From Paragordius varius (lineage: Eukaryota; Animalia; Nematomorpha): DNA of 64,000 bases. The notes under the pieces were generated by a model, which was not told where the DNA came from, did not search any database, and saw nothing but the letters and a program-made list of their open reading frames with translations. The stretch lies in assembly GCA_964247055.1 (NCBI GenBank), contig OZ176055.1, positions 8,804,001-8,868,000 of the forward strand, in the 5' to 3' direction. This document shows, piece after piece, positions 443-63,576 of the stretch; within the stretch, counting starts at the first letter, position 1; every line of letters starts with the position of its first letter. Made by a program: the position numbers and the translations under genes.

Positions 443-1115
443 CTGTGTTTCCATTTCCAACATTTTAGCTTGGTGCATGGTTAAATTGGTTAAATTAATT
501 TCCATATTCCGTTGATATAGGGTAATGTACAAGGATTGTAGGGATGAAAGTATGGATTGAATTTTGTCGTTTATAATTTTTGATGTGGAATACATATGAT
601 GATAGTTTTCATCTAAAGTTTCTGTGGTTTGAAAAAATATTTTGATTTACAATCTTTTAAGTAATTAATGATTTTACAAAGAATATATATGTATTAGGAT
701 ATTGAAATTTTTTGCTGGGATCTATGATGGCTACCTTTTGTCAATAATATCATAAATTTAAAGGCTATAAAAAACAGGAAAGTAAAACCTACGACTCATT
801 TTTCAGAGATCGAAAGAGAACTAGTTTCCCTTTGTAACATAGTAAAAAAATTTTTTTGTAAAGGTCTGCATTCATATGAAATTTTCTTCCACTGATTTTT
901 CAATTATACTTTAATCTATATATTTATAAAAATGGAAAATGCTGGCTTTGTGATCTGGTACCGGAAAACCGGTAGACACATTCAAATCCAAACTTCGAAA
1001 AAATATAATCATTAATGAATGCCCCGACAATAGCTTTGCACTTTTTTTGAAATAGTCCCCCCCAGAAGTCCGAAGGACTTCCTCGCGCTGCTACGCAGCA
1101 CGAGATTTACGCTAG

Positions 1116-1156
<41 letters not shown>

Positions 1157-4100
1157 GTTTGTTTTGCCTACAAATAATATTTTTGTTTCAGCTTTTTCGT
1201 TTTTATTTGTATAATTTAATCGAGAAGGCATTGTTCTTGTAATTAATTATTTCCGATAAGCAAAATATTCCAATAAAAGGTCAGAAGACAGTATTTTTTA
1301 TTTTGTTTCAATTAGTAAAATATATAAAAGTATTTAATTAAAATGGAAAAATGAAACATGCCAAGAATAGTTAATAAACAGATTAATTAATATTTCCTAA
1401 CAATTACTTAAATAAACACGTATAAAACTAAAATTTAAACGTGGGTTAGAGTTTCTTAAAACTCATGCATATACCCTATTTTTATCTCAGGATATACTCA
1501 AATGATCAAAATTATCACATTAAAATGGTTTAACCTAGATTTTTACAAAAAAATTTATATGTAATATACCTTTAATATTTGTTGTCGAGATTTTCGTTTC
1601 TAATGAATCGCATCTTTTTGCAATTTGACTATTTTTAACTTTGGCTGACCAAATAAGATGGGCCAAATTTTTGGTGACCTCTTTTGCCAACGTTATAATT
1701 TCTTCAAATTTTATGGACGTGTCCACCTTCTTATCTGTTAGTTTGTGCACATTTTCGCTACCAAGAAAATTTTTTTAAAAAATAAAGATAAAATCCTTTT
1801 TAAGGTCTTTTAAATATTATTCTATAAAAAATATATATTAATTTGTACATTACCTTAAAATACCCCAGAGAAAAGGTGATTTTAATTAAAATATGAAGTT
1901 ATGCGGGCAAAGCGTAAAATATATGGACAAATATTTTTTGTTTTCTAAAAGAAAACAAAATTCTTCTAAATTGAAATATAATATATTTAAAAATTTTCAC
2001 AGTATTAAGTAGAATTGTATATTGGTAACACAATCAGTTATATATTTGACATTAATTAAATAAGCTATAAAGAAAATAATAAGGTTTAAAAAAGTATGGC
2101 TGTCTTTTATTCAAAAAAAAATTTGTTTTATTACGTTTTATCCTACGTTTCATATCAATTTTTAGATGGAAATTAAAACAAAGAAAAAAAAATTTACAAA
2201 TGTAAAAATCATGATATTTCCAAAATTTAAACACAAATAACTAAAATATATAAATTTCTTTAAAATATCTTTTAAAATATTAATACATGAAAAATGTTGC
2301 ACTAATCCCGACAATTTTAGCAGCTGAAAAGAATCCTTGATTCCATTTATCACCTCTGTAATAAAATTTGATAGTTGGCTGTTTGCTATTGTCATTCATT
2401 TGCGCTTCACCATTGTTAATGTTATTGATAATAAAATCTGGTATTTTATTTTTTTCAAGCTGATATAGGGTGTTTTGAAACTTTGCAGCTTGTTCAATAA
2501 ACAATTTGACATTCTAATAAAAAAATTACTAATTTATAAATATCAAAAATTTTTTATTTAATTCATAATTAATACAGATTATTGCGCTATTGCTCATATA
2601 AACAAGTGGAAAGAAAGTACAATCATTAAACATAAATTACAATATAATTAGAATACATAATCTTTAATAAATGAAAAAACACAAATATTTTATAAAAAAC
2701 ATTTTCATTTTATTTAACCATTTATGTTAATAAATGTAGAATCACCAATTTTAAATTACAATCACATTTGAAATTAATTAATTTCCAAAGCGAAAAATTA
2801 AAATTGTGAAACATTGTGATATTTAAACAATTCATCTATAATAATTAAATGATGATAGCATCCTCTATTTAAACCAGGGATCTTCGAGGGACACATTAGT
2901 AAAATATTCTGGTGAAAATTTTTTTAGATTTGACCTGTAATGCAAAACTCTACTATTTATTTCACCAATTTTTCCTAGTACATTGCAAAATGGAGAGATT
3001 TATTTAAGAAAATAATGATATTTTCCCGCGTATGCCGGACACCTCGTGATTTAAACAAAGCTAAAAATATACTTTATAATTATTTAACAAAAATTATAAA
3101 CATAAAAAATTTTGTACATTATTTTCAAACATACCTGCATTAATATTAAAGTTGAGGGGACTCCATCCGACAACCTCTCAAAACAACTTCTTAAACACCT
3201 AAAACCATTTGCGCACAAAACAAGCTCATCCGTTAAAAACAGTTCCGATTTTATTTCCAAAATTAAAAATTTACAAATTCAAGACACAGACCTCTTAGTA
3301 ACACTAGATGTAGAATCACTCTTTACAAAAATACCCAAATCAGAAATTATGGCTATAATAAACAATTTTACACAAACAGGTCTTAATCCTGATATACCAA
3401 AATTGATCCGGATATGTCTATATAATACATATTTTGTTTTCAATAACGAGTTTTACCTTAAAAACAATGGTACACCAATGGGACTAAGCATATCACCAAT
3501 CCTAGCAGATATCTATATGGAAAACCTGGAAAAACAGATATTTAACAGTTCCGAATTTCTCCCTACCATATGGCTACGTTATGTTAATGACATATTTGTT
3601 ATATGGCCCCACGGAGAAGACAGGTTACGTAATTTTTTTGATCATATAAACAAAATGAATAAAAATATTAATTTTACCATGGAATACAATAATACCTCTA
3701 TAAGTTTTTTAGATACATACATTACCAAAACACCCGATGGCCATCTCAATCACACGATCTATCGCAAACCAACCCACACCAACCTCTACCTAAACGCTCA
3801 CTCACACCACCACCCAGCTCAAAAACACTCAGTTATTAAAACACTCATCCATAGAGCCTATGACCTGACTAGCATCTCTAACCACAGAATTATCAAATCT
3901 CAAACATACGTTCCAACGAAATGGCTACTCCAAACAACTTTTTAATAAAATTCTTCACAAAACCTCAAATAAAAAAGATAACAATTTTGTATCCACAGCC
4001 ACCTTACCTTTCATTAATAATGTTACCACCAAAATCGGTAATATTCTCAATAAATTTAATATCCGTACAGTGTATAAGCCAATGACAAAACTGATCAACC

Positions 4101-7100
4101 TAATCAAATACAAAGATCCGATACCCAAGAACAGACTACCTGGTATATACAAGGCCACATGTTCATGTGAAAGCGTCTATATAGGTGAAAGTGGTAGAAG
4201 TATAGACGTCCGTTTACGTGAACACTCCCAATACATTCGTCTTAATAAACCGACCTCAGGTTTATCTGAACACGTTTGCAAGGAAGGACACTTCATTGCG
4301 GACACCAAGGTGATTACAAATATAGAAAACTACAACAAGCGTCTCATACGCGAGTCAATAGAAATTAAGAAAAACAATGCATCACTTAATAGGGACGATG
4401 GCCTAATATTGTCTCCTATTTGGAATTATATATTAATAGAATAACAATATCACTTTAATCAATCCACTATAATTATCACACATCCATAACACTTATCATA
4501 TTTATGTCTTTGATAATGTTGCAAAGGTAATTGATTTTTTCCAATATACAATAATTTTTAATGTTACTGGTTTTTTCAACAATTACCTATATCACACTAT
4601 ATAAGGCATCTTATTACGTTACAATTCATTTAATATTTTTTCGATAAAGACTTTACTATTAAAGTCGAAAATTAAAATATATATTTATATTTGTACGCAT
4701 TTCAGCTTAATTTTTTTTAATAAATACCTGCATTAATGTTGTAGCTAATTCCAACAATTTTTTATCATCCATATTGTAGGAAGGGACCTTGATAAGCAAC
4801 GAAAGTTTTTGTTCCAAATGTTGACTAGATTGACTAATTTTAGCGTATAACTCTTCAATCTCCATATCTAATTTTGCTAATGGAAAAAAATACGGAAATT
4901 TTATTTAAGAATATCATTTAACCCCTAAACAATTCAAATTCACCCTTGAATGAAAATTCACCCTAAAAATAAATTGTCTGTTTTGGGGCTAATATAACTC
5001 ATCATTAATATCAATTAAATTATTTCTTTAAAAGTATAGTTTATTATTTTTTCAGTCCTATGTTAAGTTTAAAAATTTTCTTTTTTTTATAAAATATAAA
5101 TAATTATTTATATTCAATAGCACATTTATAGGGTAAATTTGAATTGTCCCAGAAGATTTTAATTTGTTTAAAGGTGATTTTTATTGTTCAAAGGTTAATT
5201 TCAGGTGTAAATGGTGTGTCAAGTTTTAATGACATATTTTTATTATTGGTTTCAGCTATGTTTTTGATAAACTTTAAATTACAATAAAAGTATAACCAAA
5301 TAAAGTATCAGTGTAATGAAAAAAATCATATAAATAATGAAAAGCACTTATGTTTTCTTTTTGGCTTCATAAAAAAATTTATGATTCTAATTTAAGTTGT
5401 ATTATTATGTAGATATAATTACAATATAAACTTTTTGCGAGTAATTTATTAAGAATTACATTGATTCGTTAAATGATGATCCCAAAAGCTAGATTATTTT
5501 TAGTGCTATTTTCCTTAATTTCATATAAATTATTATCATAAAAAACAAAAAATTCTAAACCTATTTCTATTTTTTGAAAATCTCATCCTATATGTGGTGA
5601 GTAAATTCATATTATTGACCTACCTTCATTTTCTACTAAAGTCTCATTAGGTCCTTCAACTTGAATTTGGGTTAATATCCCATTATCCTGATTTTGAGGA
5701 TTAAAATCATTATGTGCATTCATCATTATTTCCTGAATAACTTTATTAAATTGATCGATAGATTCTTGTAGTGTGGCATTAAACATTTTCCACGGTCCAC
5801 ATATCATATAATTTTGTGTTGTCCCCATTGATATAAGGGTTTTAATTCCATTTTCCATAGTTTTTACCACATTTTTTGCTACTTTAACGATGTTTTCGTA
5901 ATCCTGTTTATTAGGAAAAATCCTAGAAGAATCAAAAACGGTAGAAATATGTTGAGATTTATCATTATTATCTTCAGTGAGTTCAAGATTGACCATTTCA
6001 AAGTCCTCATTAATATTATGATCTTTTTCGTCTCCAAATTGAGTTATATAATTGTTGAGGATGGTACATATGAATTGAACCTATTAAAATATATTTAAAA
6101 GAGATTTTAGCATACTACATTGGAGAATAAGATTTCAAGTAATCAAAGTAAATTATAGGCTAAATAAGAATATATGCTCAAAAAAAACACATATATATGA
6201 GTTTTTATATTTACCAATTGAATTATGAACACTTCTAAATAATTAAAACTTTAACAAAACAATCGTTTAATGTTAATTTATAAAAAATTAATGACGTATA
6301 CGAATATAAAAAATATTTATTTCAGAAAAAAATAAAATTAAATAACTATAAACAAATGTATGTTGAACAACAACTAGTTTTTTAAACCTTGGCATTTTAT
6401 ATAATTACCGTTTCAAAATAAAGGAATAAAGATGAGCTTGTAAAACACTCAATTATATAATAAAAATTGAAATTATATAGTTTATTGATAATCATAATTA
6501 TTAAAATTTAGCTATTTTTGTAAAACATTGTCTTTTAGTTTTAAAGTTTTTATGATTTCTTTTTATAAATTTTCTTTTTCTTATATATACTACTTACTTT
6601 AAAGTTTATGGTTAAAAGACGGTAACAATAAGTTAACAAATTGTCTAAAAAAGATGACATTCCGTTTTCACTATAATTGTTGTTTGTTTTCATTTCAGAA
6701 TTGAGATTTGCATCATTCTTAGAGAACAGTGTTGAATTATTCATAAATTTAGATATACTTTCTATTAAAGATTCGCATAAAACTAAATCCAAATTAGGTA
6801 ATTGGCTTAATTTTAAATACATGATATATAATTGATCATGGTTGATATTATTTTTGTAGCTATATGTTATATTATCGCCTGTGGAATCGTAAAACATTTG
6901 ACTAGATTGAGTGAGTTGATTGAGTATGCTTTGTAGGAATGTATCTTAAAGTTTGAAAAAATGGGTTTAAAAAATTTAAAATTTATTCGAAATCAAAAAC
7001 TTAATCAAAAAATAATTAAGGAATCCAATATTTTATAAAAATAAAATAAAACAATATTTACGTAAAAAATTTAATAAAAAATATTAAGGTAAAAATTATT

Positions 7101-10100
7101 CAAAACCAAAAACTTAACTAAAAATTCTAGATTTTATAAAGTATCTTAAAATAAAACAATATTTAGGTAAAAATTATAAACATAATTTAAACATATTTAA
7201 AATTTAGTTGAATATGGAAAAATTAACGAAAAATAATTATAAAATAAATATATATATTTAGGAAACAATTAAAAAAAGCTAAAAATTTATTTAAAATTGC
7301 ATATAAACAAAAAAATATATGAAAGAGCTCACTAAGGTAAGTTATTATATAGGGCGTTTCATTAAAACCGCTAAAATTTAATGGTAAATTGGATTGTGTT
7401 GATTGATCTTGTCGCGTACTATTTTGCTATAATTCAATCAAAAAAGTAATAATTAATATTGAAATTTTGAATAAAAGCTTTATAAAATATGTTTTTTTAA
7501 CACTGAATATTTTTTATAATAATATTGATAAAAATTTACTTTTAAAATAAAATATAGAAAAGTTTGTAAAAAAATTTTTTTAAAATAAAGTATTAAATCA
7601 TAAAAATTAACTTTCAACAATTTGAAATGAGTATTGCGTAAATTGTCATACATTCCCTTCAACGTGTCATATCGATATTTGTAATTGTCGTATAAATCTT
7701 TGCAATATAAGAAGAAAAAAACATAAAATTGATTTTAAAAGCATAGCAACTAGGAATAGCACCCGGGAAAACTAATGTTATTAAAAAAAATTTAGATTAA
7801 TCATGGTCAACCATTTTTTAAAAATGAAATTTATTTCATTTTATATTTTGGGATGTTATTAGATATACTAGCTGCACTACTTCAAGAGTGTCCTTGAACA
7901 CTTTAAGTTGGTCTTTGAAATCAAGTTGGTGCTTGAACATTTCATGTTAGTCCTTTGACTTTTTTGTTTTGTTTTTAACTTTTAACGATCAAATCATGTA
8001 TCATTCATCTATTTTATCATTTTTAACCTATTTTCTTGATTTAACCAAATTTTTAAATCACCTTTGATCATTCAAAAACTGTATATCTCTATTAAGCTTT
8101 TAAAAAATATATTAATTTTAATGAGATAAAAATATAAGTTTTCTGGGTTATTAGTTACCAATTTTCGTTGAAAACATTTATAATTAATAATATTTTTGAC
8201 TTGAAAAAAATTAGTTGGAAACAAAAAATTGGTTTTTTAACCAAAATATTAATTTTAAATGAATAAATATATATCATAAATCAAAAATTAGGTTAAATAA
8301 TAATAATAAAATAAAAAATTTTTAAATCCAAAATCAATTTTAAGAACCAACTAGTGTTTAAGGACCAACTTGAAGCGTTCGAGGACACTCTTTAAGTGTA
8401 AATGGTATAAGGTAAAAACAACCTTTATAACGAGTATCCTCTTTTTGTGCCAATGAGGGATTATTCAACAATTGGATTAGGGAATCGGTCGTATTTACGC
8501 CGACATCAAGCGAAATTTTCCTCAGTTTACAATCATTCTTATCTAATTTAAAGAATAAAAATAAATTTTAATATAAATTAAATTGTATAACTTACTTATA
8601 AAATTGTAAAAATTAGATAAAACTACCAAATATTAAATTAATTTTATCATAAATTTATTAATTTTAATTGGACTTTGATTGGGTCTAACCAGTTATGTTT
8701 TAATAATGTAAGATCGTTTTGCAACAATAACAAATTAAAGAATTAGATCTTAATGACTTTTAATTTAAATATATAAAACGGAAAGGTAAAAAATATGAAT
8801 TTAATGCAAAAATTGGTTTGCTAATTATCATATATAATTAAAATTAATAGATAGAATAAAATCAATTTGAGTAGTTAATTTTGTTATGTTCTATTTAGTT
8901 AGGATTGTTTAAATTTTTGGTATAATTAACTAGTTTTAACCGCGAATAACTATATTATTACGGAAAAACCGGTCAATATTATTACGGAAAAACCTCAAAA
9001 AACCTAGCCCCACATTTAATTTTTTTACCATTTTAGTTTTAATACTCAATCCCTAAAATATATTTATATTATTTTATTAAAACCTTCTTCTTTACTATAA
9101 CCATTTTCCGATAAAGTATCATTGTTGGAAATTGTTTCGTTATCAGAATTCTTGGAATTATTTGATGAGATTGATTTTGTCGTAACAACAGACGGAATAA
9201 TAAAATCAGTTTTAGCGATTCCATTATGGAAATAGGGTTGTTTCATAAGCTCTTCATCATCATAATCAGCATTTTCCTCATTAAATTTTTGAGATTCCTA
9301 GTGTAAAAAGTTAAAATTATAAACAAAAAATATGTAAATGTTAAACTCGTAAAAATTAGATTTTTATGATTTTTTATTCACAACTAATTGATAAAATAAA
9401 TTTTTTTACATTTTTAAACTATGTACATAATATCTATATTTTTGTCATAATGAAAGCCTTGTTAAAAAAATATTTTCTGTGTTTAGTAGAATAAATATCA
9501 ATTTTATAAAAATTTTACGATTTAATTTTTTAGTTTTATTTTACATTTTCGATAACTTGTAGTAATCGAAAATTAATGCATAACTTTAAAATAATTTCCA
9601 ATTATTGTTGGAATTAATAATTCCAATATTAAAAAAAATTAGGGATACGTTTTTACGATTATACGGTAATTTTTGTCTGTTGTTATATACCATTTAAAGT
9701 TCAAATTCACTCTTGGCCAATTCAAATTTTCCCTAAAATAAATTATGTGTTTTATAAAATAAAAAATTACCCATGTTTTTTTTTATTTTTAAAAAATGAT
9801 ATTTTGTTCTGAAAAATAATAAACTATGTAATGATAGGTTATATTAGCCCGAAAACACATATTTTATTTTTAGGGTGAATTTGAATTGTTCGAGGGTGAA
9901 TTTGAATTGTCCAAGGGTGAATTTGAATTTAAAATGGTATAATAAAAACCTTTATACCAATCAATGGTACTTAATACTTTTTGTAGCCAAAAACAATTAG
10001 ATAAAATAAAAATGTCCATAAATTTAATTATTTTGAAAGCTAATAATTGCGTTGATAAAAATATAATTGATAATTATGAAATTATGGATCTAAATCAAGC

Positions 10101-11944
10101 ATAAAAACCAACAAATTACTGATTTACTAGGGTGTTGATTTTGTGTTGGTAAAAGTATAGAAGTAAGCAGAGTTATATGTGGATTATCATTGGAGCTTTT
10201 GGAAGTGGTCATATTGTCATCAGAAACAGCTGTTAAACAAAAAAATATGTTTAAAACAATGTCATAATTGATTAATATTCTTTTTCCGTAAATTGTGATA
10301 CATTTTATTTTAAATAATAAAAATATTTCAATCCCATTTTTCAATTTTGTATAAATAAATCAAATATTAAAAAACAGAGCATAAATTGTCAATTAAATAT
10401 TAATACTATTATGAAAACCGTGTAAGGTATCAATTGAAAACCTTACACCATAATTTAATTTTTAAAATAACTATTTTAAGTATACCATTTGGAATTCAAA
10501 TTCACCCTTGAACATTTCAAATTCACCCTAAAAATAAATTAGTTTTCGGGCTAATAAAACTTATCATTAATATAAAATATATTCTTATGGCATTGTTTTT
10601 TATTTGTCAATATAGAAAATTTCATAATTTAAAAAATATAAAAAAATATAGGTAATTTTTAACTTTAAAAAACACATAATTCATTTTAGGGTGAATTTAA
10701 ATTGTTCAAGGGTAAATTTGAACTGTAAATGGTATATAAATCTCAAAAATTTCAATATTTTTATATCATATATACTAACATTGTTGATCTGAAACAGATA
10801 ATGTATCATTCTGTAAACTGTATTCCATTAAAGTTTCTTGGGGTAATCGTTCGTATATATGGGCACCCCCCACATCATTAAAATCAGATTTTATTCCCGG
10901 GTTGCATTTTGAAATTAATTGACTTTGTTCATATAGTGTTTTATTCAAACCAATAAAATTGTCCTTATAATTAATGGCATTTGAGAGTTTTGTTGAAATG
11001 TTAGAAGAAGGAGTCGTCTCAGAATACGTTGGAAGCGATGATTTGCGCAATAAAAAATTGGGCATCTAAAAAAATTTATGCAAATAAAAACACATATTGT
11101 AAATTTTTTAGATATTAAAATGAAATCTAAAAATACAGTAAAAATTAAAATTATACGGACAAAACGTGAAAATATAAAGACACATAATATTTTTTTCTAA
11201 AAGACTACCATACTTTTTTAATCTTTATTTTTAATAATTATAATTCATTGTTTTAAACTACAAAGTATAATATAGAAATGTAAATTGGTAACATCATTAA
11301 TTGTATATTTTACAAATATAATTTCTTTTTTATAGGATAAATTAAGTTTAAAAAAAGTATGGTTGTCTTTTGAAAAAAAATATTTGTCTTTATAATTTTA
11401 TATTTTGTCCGTATAATTTTAATTTTTACTGTATAAACCATTCACATTTTTAATTTACTCTTAAACATTTCAAATAACCACCCTAAAAATATGTGTTTCT
11501 GAATCATAACTCAGGATTAAAAATATATTATCATTTTTTAATTTTATTACCATAGTTTGTAAATTAAATACTCGTGAATTTTAATTGTTGTTTATGATAA
11601 TAAAAAGATTAATATAATAATTAAAACAAGGACCTGATATACTTACTCATCCAAAATAAATTTAACGAATTTTCGAAAATACATATGTATAATATAAAGT
11701 ATGATATAATTGGATCAATATATAATTTATCAGGTGATTTTTCAATTGTTTAAGGGTTTTTAAATCTAAATTGTATATATTAATATTATCTTTGTAAAAA
11801 TTAATAATTTTATCCATAAAACAATATAAAATCAAAGGATAAAACTAATTCAAAAAAAATATCTGACCTCCGTTAATTGAGGGATGGCCACCAAATTTTT
11901 CAAATACTGTAATCGAATACAATTTTGGAAAAATTTCTTTAATC

Positions 11945-11975
<31 letters not shown>

Positions 11976-14585
11976 TATAATACAGTAATTAAAATTATGA
12001 CAGGTAAAACGCATAAAAAACATAAAGACAAAACTATTTTATTTAAAAAACCAATTTTTCGATTTTAATATTTTTTCTATATAACCTCTAAGTATTAAAA
12101 ATATGAAAATGATAATAATTTGAATCTTTATTCCTTAATTTGCAGCCAAAAAATTAGCAATTTTTAAATAAATTATGATTTAAAAAAATATGGTTGTCCT
12201 AATTTTTAGGAAAAAATATTTGTCTCCTAATTTTTATACGTTTTAACTTTATAATTTAAATTTATACCATAAAACTATTATTGAATTAGGTTAAATTAAA
12301 AAAATTATTTGTAATAAGTATCAGAGTAAAATTAAACTTACATGTTGAAACATTGTTCAAATCGTTTTCTATGTCCTACCAAAAATTCATGATCAAGTCC
12401 TAAAACAAATATATAAAAATTTTCAAATTAAAGCGATATATAAAAGATTTATTTAAAGAAAAATATGTAATTAAAAACGTAACCGTTCTTGTGGAATCGT
12501 AATAAGAATTAACTTTTTTTCAAAAAAACGCTTTAAAACCAAAGAATGGTTGCAAAAAATAGTTTGAGAGTTTCAAAAAAAAACTCTTGTATATATCTAT
12601 GCTCATTTATTTGGAACATTAAATATGCATTTTTTTATTTTAATAATATAATAATAAAAATTAAATTTCGAGCGATAAGTTTATGTAATTTATTCAGTAA
12701 AAATTGATATTATACGGACAAAAAATAAAAATATAAAGCAAAAATTATTTTTCAAAAGACAAACCATACTATTTTAAACCCTATTTTATCCTATAAAAAT
12801 CATTTAATTACAATTGTAAAATATATACTGTATTGTGATACCAATTTACATCTCTAATATACTTTGTTGACAAAATTCAGATGTATATAAAATAATCAAC
12901 ATTTAATAAAAAGTGTGGTTGTCTTTTAAAAAAAATTTTCTTTATATTTTTACGTTTTCTCCGTAAAATTTCAATTTTTACTGTACGTTTATTTTTGGTA
13001 AATATTAAAAAAATTAGACAACTGTTATCGATTAACGCCACAAACAATAATTTATGGTAAAACATTCAAAAATATGTCATATATAAAATTATCAGTTTTC
13101 GAATCTTAAGTCTTCGTTTTTATATATATGTATGCCAAGAAACTCTAAAAATACTCTTCATGTCACTAAAACCGTAATAAACAATTGTTTTTATCCTAAA
13201 TCCATTATGTAAAAAGTATTGTTGATATATAATTCCATCAATAAAATTATTCTTTTGTCATGTTTTATAGACATCCCATTATATATTTGCAAAAGAACTC
13301 TAATACCGTAATCCCCAAAACGAAAGCAGCTTGGAAAGCATCGAAATTCGTGATTGAATATTATAAAAAATTTAAAACTCTTTAAAAACTTCAATTAATG
13401 CGCCGTACCTTACCGAATAGAGCATATATTTAAGTTGTGTTAATTTAAATAATTTCGAAATTCGAATCGCGTGCCAAAAAATGTTAAATTCATAAGATAA
13501 GGAGTGCCATTCAAATGTTTTATAGCCCATATACTTTTGCAACACCCCACGCCCCATGTAAGACCAAAAAATAGTATATAAATTTAAAAAAACTCAAACC
13601 CATATTTATTTTTAAGTGAAGGAGGGTATCAAAAATATTTATTTTTCAATTTTTCTATAAAGATAAATTTATTAATGATTATGAAAAAAAAGTTTATAAT
13701 CAAAATAAAATTTTTATATAATAAGTTAAACATCAAAAATGATTCTCTATTCCAATTCTCCAAAAATATATCCTAAAAATTAGGATAAAAAGAAAGGGGT
13801 GGTGTTTAAAAAAGTTATGACTTACTGTTATGTAATTTTCGCATAATATAGACGATATGATCATAAAGCAAAACGGCTTCTTGAATACACGGGACCAGGG
13901 GTTGAATACGCAGTTGTCCAGCACTTGTTAAGGAATTGAGACTTTAAAAAAATGTATAATAATATCAAATTTCTGGGAATAATTATTTTCAATACTAAAT
14001 AAATTTACCCTTGAACATTACAAATTCATTCTTGCCATTTCAAATTTACCCTTGAACATTTCAAGTTAACCCTAAACTATATTATAAGCTCTTGCCCTTT
14101 TTTAACTAATAATTGATATGATATTTTTTATAACTTGATTCTATCATTTTTTCTTGTATTAAACTTATATCAAAAAATATGGGTAATTTTCAAAAACGTA
14201 ATTTCTAGTTAGGTATTTAAAATGTTTAAATGTAATTTTAAATGTTCAAGAGTGAATTATTTACAGGGTATTTTGTAATATAATGTTAAGCTCTTTTAAC
14301 TATAGACACTTATACATTATATTCAAGTCACCCTTGAGATCTAAATTTATCACTTCAAACATTAGAAATTAACGCTAAAAAATATATTATGTATTTAAAT
14401 AAAATATCCATTTTAGGCAAAATTTATGATTATTAATGGAAAAAAATAAATGAATGAACAAAATATAGTCTTTTGGAAAAACTAATATTTTATCTCAATT
14501 ATGAGTTGTTTAACCAAAAAAACATACATTTTATTTGGGTGAATTTGAAACGTTCAAGGGTTGAATTTTATTAAAGAGTGAAAAG

Positions 14586-14620
<35 letters not shown>

Positions 14621-15309
14621 AATATCAGATATGATAATTTTAAAAGTATACTTATTTATTTCTAGGGATTGAAAGATGGCAGATTGCAATCGCAATATGT
14701 CTTCGAGATAATCTAGTAAAACTGTTGAAACTTGAAAGTAAGCATCATCATCCCCATAAATTTTATCAAGTTCGGTTTGTGTCAAAATTAAATTGTTGGG
14801 AAAATGTGGATTCTTGCATATTATAAATGTACAAAATTTACCTTGTTATGAAATTCGAGTTTGTTGCTAATCAAAATACAAAAATAATTGATCAATATGC
14901 TAAAATCATCTTTCAAATGACTCCATAACTTGCCCAAATCTTTTATACGCGATTTAAATTTATATGATATTTCCAAAGTCTATAGATAATATATAATGTT
15001 ATTAATTACATTCCGTTGACCATCTCTTAAAAGTTTGTATAAAACGTATAAAAATTTCCAGCATACAATTTGATTTCCTTGTAATGGCATATTTTCCATA
15101 ACAACTTTCCAAAATAATTCACATCCAACCCCGACATAAGATCCGATTATAATGGCTTAAATTTATAGATATGGAGTAAAACCTCTGACATGTTTCTCCT
15201 TTGCTGGACCTTCCTGTAAGCTCAGTCCTTTAAGGATACTGCTAACCTATGTATCGTAATAAAAGTTTTGACTAACTTGATGATCGTAAAATTGTTTTTG
15301 CTTAGACAT
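443..15309 (-). CDS. HIP1: Huntingtin-interacting protein 1 / HIP1R / Sla2 family (ANTH + I/LWEQ talin-like domain), 20 coding exons, about 1083 aa in window, final exon unresolved
   Basis: Exons (minus, GT-AG, phases all compatible): 15277-15309, 15183-15246, 15010-15155, 14842-14979, 14652-14812, 13826-13941, 12342-12399, 11868-11943, 10780-11065, 10120-10229, 9084-9297, 8423-8542, 7612-7697, 7333-7426, 6598-6944, 5624-6080, 4728-4876, 2287-2513, 1570-1757, 443-621. ANTH motifs: K-X9-KEKH (ILKGLSLQEGPAKEKHVR), CWKFLYVLYKLLRDG, EFHNK|NPHFP, TSAGQLRIQPL, GHRKRF, LQYLKNLVAIPQL. I/LWEQ motifs: FYYRGDKWNQGFFSAAKIVG, KFEEIITLAKEV, SAKVK, LTMHQAKMLEMETQ. In-frame TGA just upstream of the ATG at 15309. 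Cannot distinguish HIP1 from HIP1R. Confidence 0.92.
915..1115 (+). mobile_element. Non-autonomous Helitron (about 200 bp) in a HIP1 intron
   Basis: Begins TC(TATATATTTATAAAAATG) after an A; ends with hairpin CTCGCGCTGC-TAC-GCAGCACGAG, a short spacer, then CTAG followed by T. No TSD; A|T insertion is the Helitron signature. Confidence 0.85.
1885..2165. mobile_element. MITE family B, degenerate copy
   Basis: Recognisable arms (AAATATGAAGTTATGCGGGCAAAGCGTAAAA ... AAAAAGTATGGCTGTCTTT); ends approximate. Confidence 0.55.
3145..4444 (+). pseudogene. Disrupted Penelope RT-endonuclease ORF
   Basis: ORFs 3112-3945 and 4070-4444 join into one polyprotein with a single frameshift near 3880 (alternate frame TELSNLKHTFQRNGYSK...IRTVYKPMTK runs into the GIY-YIG ORF). 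Catalytic YxDD reads YVND. Confidence 0.85.
4641..4670 (+). ncRNA. Degenerate hammerhead-ribozyme-like motif at the Penelope 3' end
   Basis: TCGATAAA-GACTTT-ACTATT-AAAGTC-GAAA: perfect 6-bp stem II followed by GAAA. The 5' core differs from CTGATGA at 3 positions; stems I/III not clearly formed. Confidence 0.4.
4912..5216. mobile_element. MITE family A
   Basis: TIRs related to TATACCATTTACAATTCAAATTCACCC...GGGTGAATTTGAATTGTAAATGGTATA with ~21-bp subterminal repeats. Confidence 0.75.
7864..8409. mobile_element. MITE, family A-related variant (longer, different subrepeats)
   Basis: Inverted arms TTCAAGAGTGTCCTTGAAC...AAGTTGGTC / GACCAACTT...GAGGACACTCTTTAAGTGTAAATGGTATA; same terminal AAATGGTATA as family A. 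Confidence 0.75.
9686..9941. mobile_element. MITE family A
   Basis: TATACCATTTAAAGTTCAAATTCAC ... GTGAATTTGAATTTAAAATGGTATA. Confidence 0.85.
10481..10736. mobile_element. MITE family A
   Basis: TATACCATTTGGAATTCAAATTCACCC ... GGGTAAATTTGAACTGTAAATGGTATA. Confidence 0.85.
11134..11433. mobile_element. MITE family B (TA-flanked, CAGT-ended, Tc1/mariner-like ends)
   Basis: TACAGTAAAAATTAAAATTATACGGACAAAACG ... TTTTGTCCGTATAATTTTAATTTTTACTGTA; long TIRs, 300 bp. Confidence 0.9.
11981..12271. mobile_element. MITE family B (diverged)
   Basis: TACAGTAATTAAAATTAT... with internal family-B motifs; right arm degenerate. Confidence 0.7.
12694..12985. mobile_element. MITE family B
   Basis: CAGTAAAAATTGATATTATACGGACAAAA ... 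CCGTAAAATTTCAATTTTTACTGTA. Confidence 0.85.
14000..14570. mobile_element. Two degenerate MITE family A copies (about 14000-14280 and 14325-14570)
   Basis: AAATTTACCCTTGAACAT / TTCAAGAGTGAATT and TTCAAGTCACCCTTGAG / GGGTGAATTTGAAACGTTCAAGGG arms; ends approximate. Confidence 0.6.

Positions 15310-31241: not shown

Positions 31242-63576
<32,335 letters not shown>

Follow-up and report, generated by a model that had tools for sequence, protein, structure and literature searches.

What becomes of a gene when a retroelement lands exactly across one of its 5' splice sites? The question is raised by a locus in the 64-kb stretch of Paragordius varius DNA analysed here (the window; G000:C6:8804001-8868000, in a 110-Mb assembly, with a G+C content of about 24%). 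The minus strand of the window carries a HIP1/HIP1R-like gene, and the border between one of its coding exons and the intron that follows is interrupted by a Penelope-like element (PLE) on the plus strand. Our preferred reading, to which we would give a probability of roughly 60%, is that a recent and by now dead PLE has come to rest on the splice border of HIP1, a gene of endocytosis, and that the element would most likely be removed in one step, together with the intron. Coordinates of all the features discussed are collected in Table 1.

The starting point is the direct repeat that brackets the insert. The initial annotation had described it as a 14-bp target-site duplication (TSD) which, on the HIP1 strand, reads as the end of an exon plus GTAT, and the repeat is exactly that. 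The 14-mer occurs twice in the 64-kb window without a mismatch, at 3131-3144 and 4724-4737; no further match was found in the window with one mismatch allowed, and two matches were seen in none of 100 shuffles. Read on the minus strand, it consists of the final 10 bases of exon 4876-4728 followed by GTAT, placing AG at 4729-4728 and GT at 4727-4726 in the copy next to the exon (the proximal site), and AG at 3136-3135 and GT at 3134-3133 in the distal copy. The repeat adjoins both termini of the element to within 0-2 bases and is unique to this site, as is expected of a retroelement TSD. Its length is better given as 12-14 bp, because the 3' end of the element usually already has A or AT: in about ten other copies, tailed or tail-less, ..TTAATAA is followed by A, mostly AT. 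The AT at 4724-4725 could have come from the target or from the element, and therefore positions +3 and +4 of the donor beside the exon may be element-derived too, in addition to +5 and +6, which had been traced to the element before. An empty-site haplotig was sought in the assembly, where the exon and the left flank are both single-copy and no second copy of either was found.

The termini of the insert agree with this. Between the repeats there are 1,579 bases, made up of a 5'-truncated PLE on the plus strand and a short stretch at its left end. Some copies of the family run past the 3' end into a common extension of 38 bases, which corresponds to the tail of 30-40 bp known from the PLE literature. 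At the left junction, 3145-3159 turns out to be a piece of this same tail in inverted orientation. The tail-derived 14-mer is likewise the terminus of the tails in L003/L004 and L007/L008, it agrees exactly with the tails of the two nearest relatives, and the junction between flank and tail in L003 is the same as at 3145. The tail match rules out two other origins that were considered for 3145-3159, namely untemplated filler and an imperfect, longer TSD. With a tail stub at the left junction, both ends of the insert are therefore canonical PLE termini, and the insert is best read as a direct, 5'-truncated body preceded by an inverted arm of which only a 14-nt tail stub is left. An inverted arm reduced to 14 bases of tail bears on the two-ended integration mechanism of PLEs, which is unclear. 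For comparison, the outer flanks of two composites were read, a naive TSD survey being unsuitable as most copies are inverted composites; the two nearest composites have outer direct repeats of 11 nt, with one mismatch, and of 9 nt or more, in line with the 12-14 found here. A Penelope insertion straddling the exon/intron border had been proposed from the outset, and the RVT_1 reading frame, the family 3' end, the tail-stub terminus and the TSD all bear it out.

The element itself encodes remnants of a reverse transcriptase (RT) and of a putative GIY-YIG-type endonuclease, in different frames. The RT is of PLE type: it matches RVT_1 (E 4e-13), and full-length relatives, to which homology begins only at 3160, extend upstream with ..LPKIHK..PLRPIV.. 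just before the point of truncation, a motif that we take to be characteristic of PLEs. The listed open reading frame (ORF) 3112-3945 starts outside the element, and it is by chance that no stop interrupts it in the TSD or in the tail stub. The endonuclease motifs (GIY, YIG, R, EH, E and N) are kept in 14 metagenomic homologues. Pfam GIY-YIG was reached by one of the 15 aligned sequences (a homologue, E 6.6e-4) and gave no match with the remnant in the window; a search of the family profile against solved structures produced nothing useful.

PLEs are known for frequent 5' truncation, head-to-head inverted arms, a tail of 30-40 bp that is confined to one end, and short TSDs (PMC8557442, PMC3846280). 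The family present in the window shows every one of these traits, together with the order of an RT followed by a putative C-terminal GIY-YIG-type endonuclease, and many of its copies in the genome are head-to-head inverted pairs of 5'-truncated elements. It departs from this picture in that the inverted arm of the inserted copy consists of only 14 nt of tail, and a scan of several copies for a hammerhead ribozyme was negative: Rfam gave no match of that kind in window positions 2300-5200 or in five related loci, which may contain no pseudo-LTR (long terminal repeat). Some PLE clades are without the ribozyme (PMC8557442).

The inserted copy is dead, because the 5' part of its ORF is gone and the frame is broken between RT and endonuclease; it also carries a private deletion of 5 nt near 3866 and a stop at 3943-3945. 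The insertion is recent. At least 61 places in the genome match the element, the closest with 97.8-98.2% identity, and the private divergence of the inserted copy is only about 1%; the identity to its relatives and the perfect TSD are what mark the insertion as young. No intact full-length copy was found at L002, the sole locus checked for one. At another locus, L003 (G000:C4:55827-58263), the two arms of a head-to-head pair of 5'-truncated copies share 99.9% identity; the complete tail of 38 nt is present on just one of the outer ends, and the outer repeat measures 11 nt with one mismatch. The pair appears to stem from one very recent insertion and shows recent activity of the family. An Rfam match to MIR2606 at L003:2614-2824 (51.8 bits, against a gathering threshold of 139.7) is an inverted-repeat artefact on the palindromic head-to-head junction, and no microRNA.

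The host gene has an ANTH domain (46 bits at 14827-15240) and a C-terminal THATCH/I_LWEQ module on one strand and in the expected order, which places it in the HIP1/HIP1R/Sla2 family. The I_LWEQ pieces, at 1589-1735 and 431-607, are weak, and so are the best matches of exon 2513-2287 to solved structures, HIP1R (1r0d) at E 0.4 and Sla2 at E 1.4. The gene looks single-copy and otherwise intact. Its exons were searched one at a time and their boundaries set by frame logic. The junction exon, 4876-4728, is bordered by ..ttag/ at 4877-4879 and by CAG/GT at 4728/4727 (the slash marks the splice border), and it is preceded by the donor AAG/GTAGGT at 5624. Its sole stop-free downstream continuation is at 2513, where the AG of the acceptor is part of an in-frame TAG; reading through the donor at 4728 instead meets a stop after six codons. 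The junction exon (query 4728-4874) had no significant match among solved structures, with chance coiled-coil hits only, and an exhaustive protein search with the 77-amino-acid exon 2283-2513 gave four repeat proteins and nothing else (plectin, ANF receptor, cohesin and Kunitz), none of them HIP1, and so no orthologue with which to check the junction. A word-index search with the same exon for transcript-derived fragments across the 4728/2513 junction yielded no candidates. The junction exon is presumably colinear with human HIP1 around ..LMQ...

What, then, did the insertion do to the splice site? The donor read CAG/GTATGT before the insertion and reads CAG/GTATTT now. The exon end and its GT are still beside the exon, and the old donor context lies 1,593 nt downstream, at the distal AG/GT, just as the initial annotation had it; this distance, from 4727 to 3135, is the element plus one copy of the TSD. 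Site strength was expressed by log-odds matrices built from the 12 other donors and 12 acceptors of the HIP1 gene, which are crude, small and confined to one gene. The initial annotation had called the original context the stronger one; by the standard of the other donors of the gene (sites 14652-15277 and 443-10780, minus strand), the retained donor shows no notable weakening: position +5 is G in four of the 12, T in four and A in four, position +4 is mostly T or A, and the retained donor, at 9.97 bits, scores above all of them. The next three donors downstream are GTATTA, GTATAT and GTATAT. Duplicated donors are also seen in another gene of the window, where a single intron (35189-36325, minus strand) contains seven copies of an exon end (..LNLLV-like) plus GTAAGT, some 150-320 nt apart; duplicated donors therefore seem to be tolerated in this genome.

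Which sites the spliceosome would choose we infer from this anatomy and from the site scores. We propose that the PLE was inserted by target-primed reverse transcription, with staggered nicks 12-14 bases apart that straddled the 5' splice site of the HIP1 exon. Filling in the stagger would have left one intact exon end with GT(AT) beside the exon, at no loss of coding bases, and would have shifted the original donor context 1,593 bases downstream. The retained CAG/GTATTT is most likely still in use, because little is required of donors in this genome beyond GT plus A/T, and the antisense element would then simply make up the opening 1.6 kb of an intron of 2,214 bases that ends at 2514. At most, the distal CAG/GTATGT would be a cryptic, competing donor, giving rise to stop-containing isoforms. 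On present evidence, the locus is best described as an ordinary intronic transposon insertion in a neat position, in a genome with very permissive donors. It is a clean natural example of a retroelement whose own insertion stagger can protect the gene, by rebuilding an exon end and a splice dinucleotide so that an insert of 1.6 kb costs no coding sequence.

Some considerations weigh against one-step removal. The matrices rest on 12 hand-inferred sites from one gene, of which a few upstream boundaries are only probable. Where two donors are nearly equal in strength, the one nearer to the acceptor is often preferred elsewhere, which would favour the distal copy. Finally, the insertion may be a deleterious allele that is polymorphic or heterozygous.

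The last two of these lead to the alternative that fares best, although we consider it unlikely: the distal donor, or cryptic exons that end on it, might capture much of the splicing, so that early-stop antisense transcripts are made and HIP1 output falls, the insertion being a young, possibly polymorphic and mildly deleterious allele. The distal donor does outscore the proximal one by 1.2 bits and is closer to the acceptor, and two acceptor-like AGs, at 3388 (6.45 bits) and 3352 (5.96 bits), would define cryptic exons of 254 or 218 nt ending at 3135. The six-codon read-through confirms that splicing from the distal donor would bring antisense element with stops into the message, as had been predicted, and the youth of the copy, from its identity to relatives and its perfect TSD, would suit an allele of this kind. 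Against this, the proximal donor holds its own against any other of the gene, and an exon growing from 149 nt to 1,742 nt would be unusual under exon definition as generally understood. The tolerance suggested by the seven exon-end copies in the other gene of the window also speaks for a harmless duplicate, as does the apparently single-copy state of HIP1.

Recursive splicing through a zero-length exon is a further alternative, and a doubtful one. Here the proximal donor would first be joined to the AG at 3135, taking out 1,593 nt, and the regenerated CAG/GTATGT would then be joined to 2513. The geometry is exact, with GT at 4727, AG at 3135 and AG/GT juxtaposed, and the regenerated donor (11.21 bits) tops all GTs of the intron. 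The acceptor half is a different matter: on the crude 12-site matrix neither the AG nor its pyrimidine tract is strong, and although its 1.83 bits exceed the scores of three of the 12 true acceptors, they rank it only 27th among the 96 AGs of the intron. The tail stub, read on the gene strand, does place a C/T-rich run immediately before the distal AG, together with a CTCAAC-like branch candidate. The juxtaposition as such is common here, for the intron has 19 AGGT sites, as against 5.2 expected from its composition, 16 of them inside the antisense element, and at seven of the 19 the acceptor half is better than at the distal AG (3525 and 3456, for example). At the distal copy the AG/GT arises automatically, because a CAG/GT border has been duplicated, and it marks no distinctive ratchet; the special status as a recursive site that the initial annotation gave it is thus not borne out by the sequence. 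Nor is an intermediate needed, since the true acceptor is directly accessible from the proximal donor.

Drosophila ratchet points, by comparison, lie in long introns (about 50-73 kb in the cited examples), are highly conserved and depend on a cryptic exon (PMC8605326). The HIP1 site resembles them in having an acceptor AG adjoining a strong donor GT, and in a weaker donor about 60 nt downstream (GTATAT at 3072, 62 nt away, 6.69 bits) that could define a cryptic exon; 3072 is a weak candidate for this role, such sites being common in this composition. It differs from them in lying in an intron of 2.2 kb, not of tens of kb, in coming from a young insertion instead of being conserved, and in its mediocre acceptor half, one among 19 AGGT sites.

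It is similarly improbable that the element plus one TSD copy (4727-3135) behaves as an intron of its own by means of the TSD-derived AG, the tail stub serving as pyrimidine tract and branch region. If it did, this would be a newly born, natural zero-length-exon recursive site, and tail-bearing PLE insertions into AG/GT targets could be self-removing, as introners are. Introners are one parallel, in that the splice dinucleotides at the two ends of the insert both come from the TSD; splicing out the stretch from GT 4727 to AG 3135 would give back precisely the RNA of the pre-insertion gene (PMC11282704). Introners are mostly short DNA transposons, which give rise to new introns within exons and form large intron families, whereas the HIP1 insert is a retroelement placed on an existing donor; it can be spliced out along with the old intron, without having to be an intron itself. 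A second parallel is provided by fungal stwintrons of the [D1,2] type, in which the donor of an outer intron harbours an inner one and the two would have to be removed one after the other (PMC12403724). In stwintrons the G and the U of the outer donor are separated by the inner intron, which makes two steps obligatory; the HIP1 exon keeps an intact donor, and two steps would be optional.

The remaining alternative, that the element was already in the intron and the exon border merely happens to resemble its flank, gains a little from the abundance of short repeats in a very AT-rich genome but is extremely improbable given the absence of any other 14-mer match at one mismatch, the result of the shuffles, and the fit of both repeat copies to canonical element termini within 0-2 bases.

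Table 1. Features of the HIP1 splice border and of the inserted PLE (window coordinates; scores from the matrices described in the text)
Feature	Position	Strand	Remarks
HIP1/HIP1R-like coding exon	4728..4876	-	149 nt; start phase 1, end phase 0; ends ..TTLMQ; assigned by frame and boundary logic and by flanking-exon matches to HIP1R THATCH and I_LWEQ
Exon-proximal (right) TSD copy	4724..4737		4728-4737 = exon end; 4726-4727 = retained donor GT
Proximal donor	4727	-	9.97 bits; the 12 other donors (leave-one-out) at most 8.58
Present intron	2514..4727	-	2,214 nt; 621 nt pre-insertion
PLE body, 5'-truncated	3160..4723	+	Antisense to HIP1; 3' end common to many copies
Putative GIY-YIG-type endonuclease coding remnant	4070..4444	+	124-amino-acid ORF in a different frame from RT; GIY..(10)..YIG, R, EH, E and N motifs
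Reverse transcriptase coding remnant	3160..3945	+	Pfam RVT_1, E 4e-13
Inverted stub of PLE tail	3145..3159	-	3145-3158 = the final 14 nt of the 38-nt tail, exactly reverse-complemented; 3159 = one junction base
Gene-distal (left) TSD copy	3131..3144		Exact 14-mer; on the minus strand AG then GT, original donor context CAG/GTATGT
Distal AG as acceptor	3135	-	1.83 bits; true acceptors -4.97 to 9.24; rank 27 of 96 intron AGs
Distal donor	3134	-	11.21 bits; proximal and distal donors are the best two of 171 intron GTs
Next HIP1 exon	2287..2513	-	Starts NVKLFIEQ..; ends at donor CAT/GTATTA

Some further observations concern the surroundings of the locus. The strongest I_LWEQ matches of the genome (41.9 and 33.4 bits) lie outside HIP1, at G000:C2:6012476-6013673, and presumably mark a talin gene. 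An abundant short repeat occupies 4918-5200, with similar stretches near 9700-9990, 10480-10720 and 14540-14570; it is scattered through the HIP1 introns and has 2,223 first-look candidates in its own genome, at 73-78% identity and on both strands, and is probably an element like a miniature inverted-repeat transposable element. It is worth adding that four introns near the ANTH domain of HIP1 are only 27-30 nt long.

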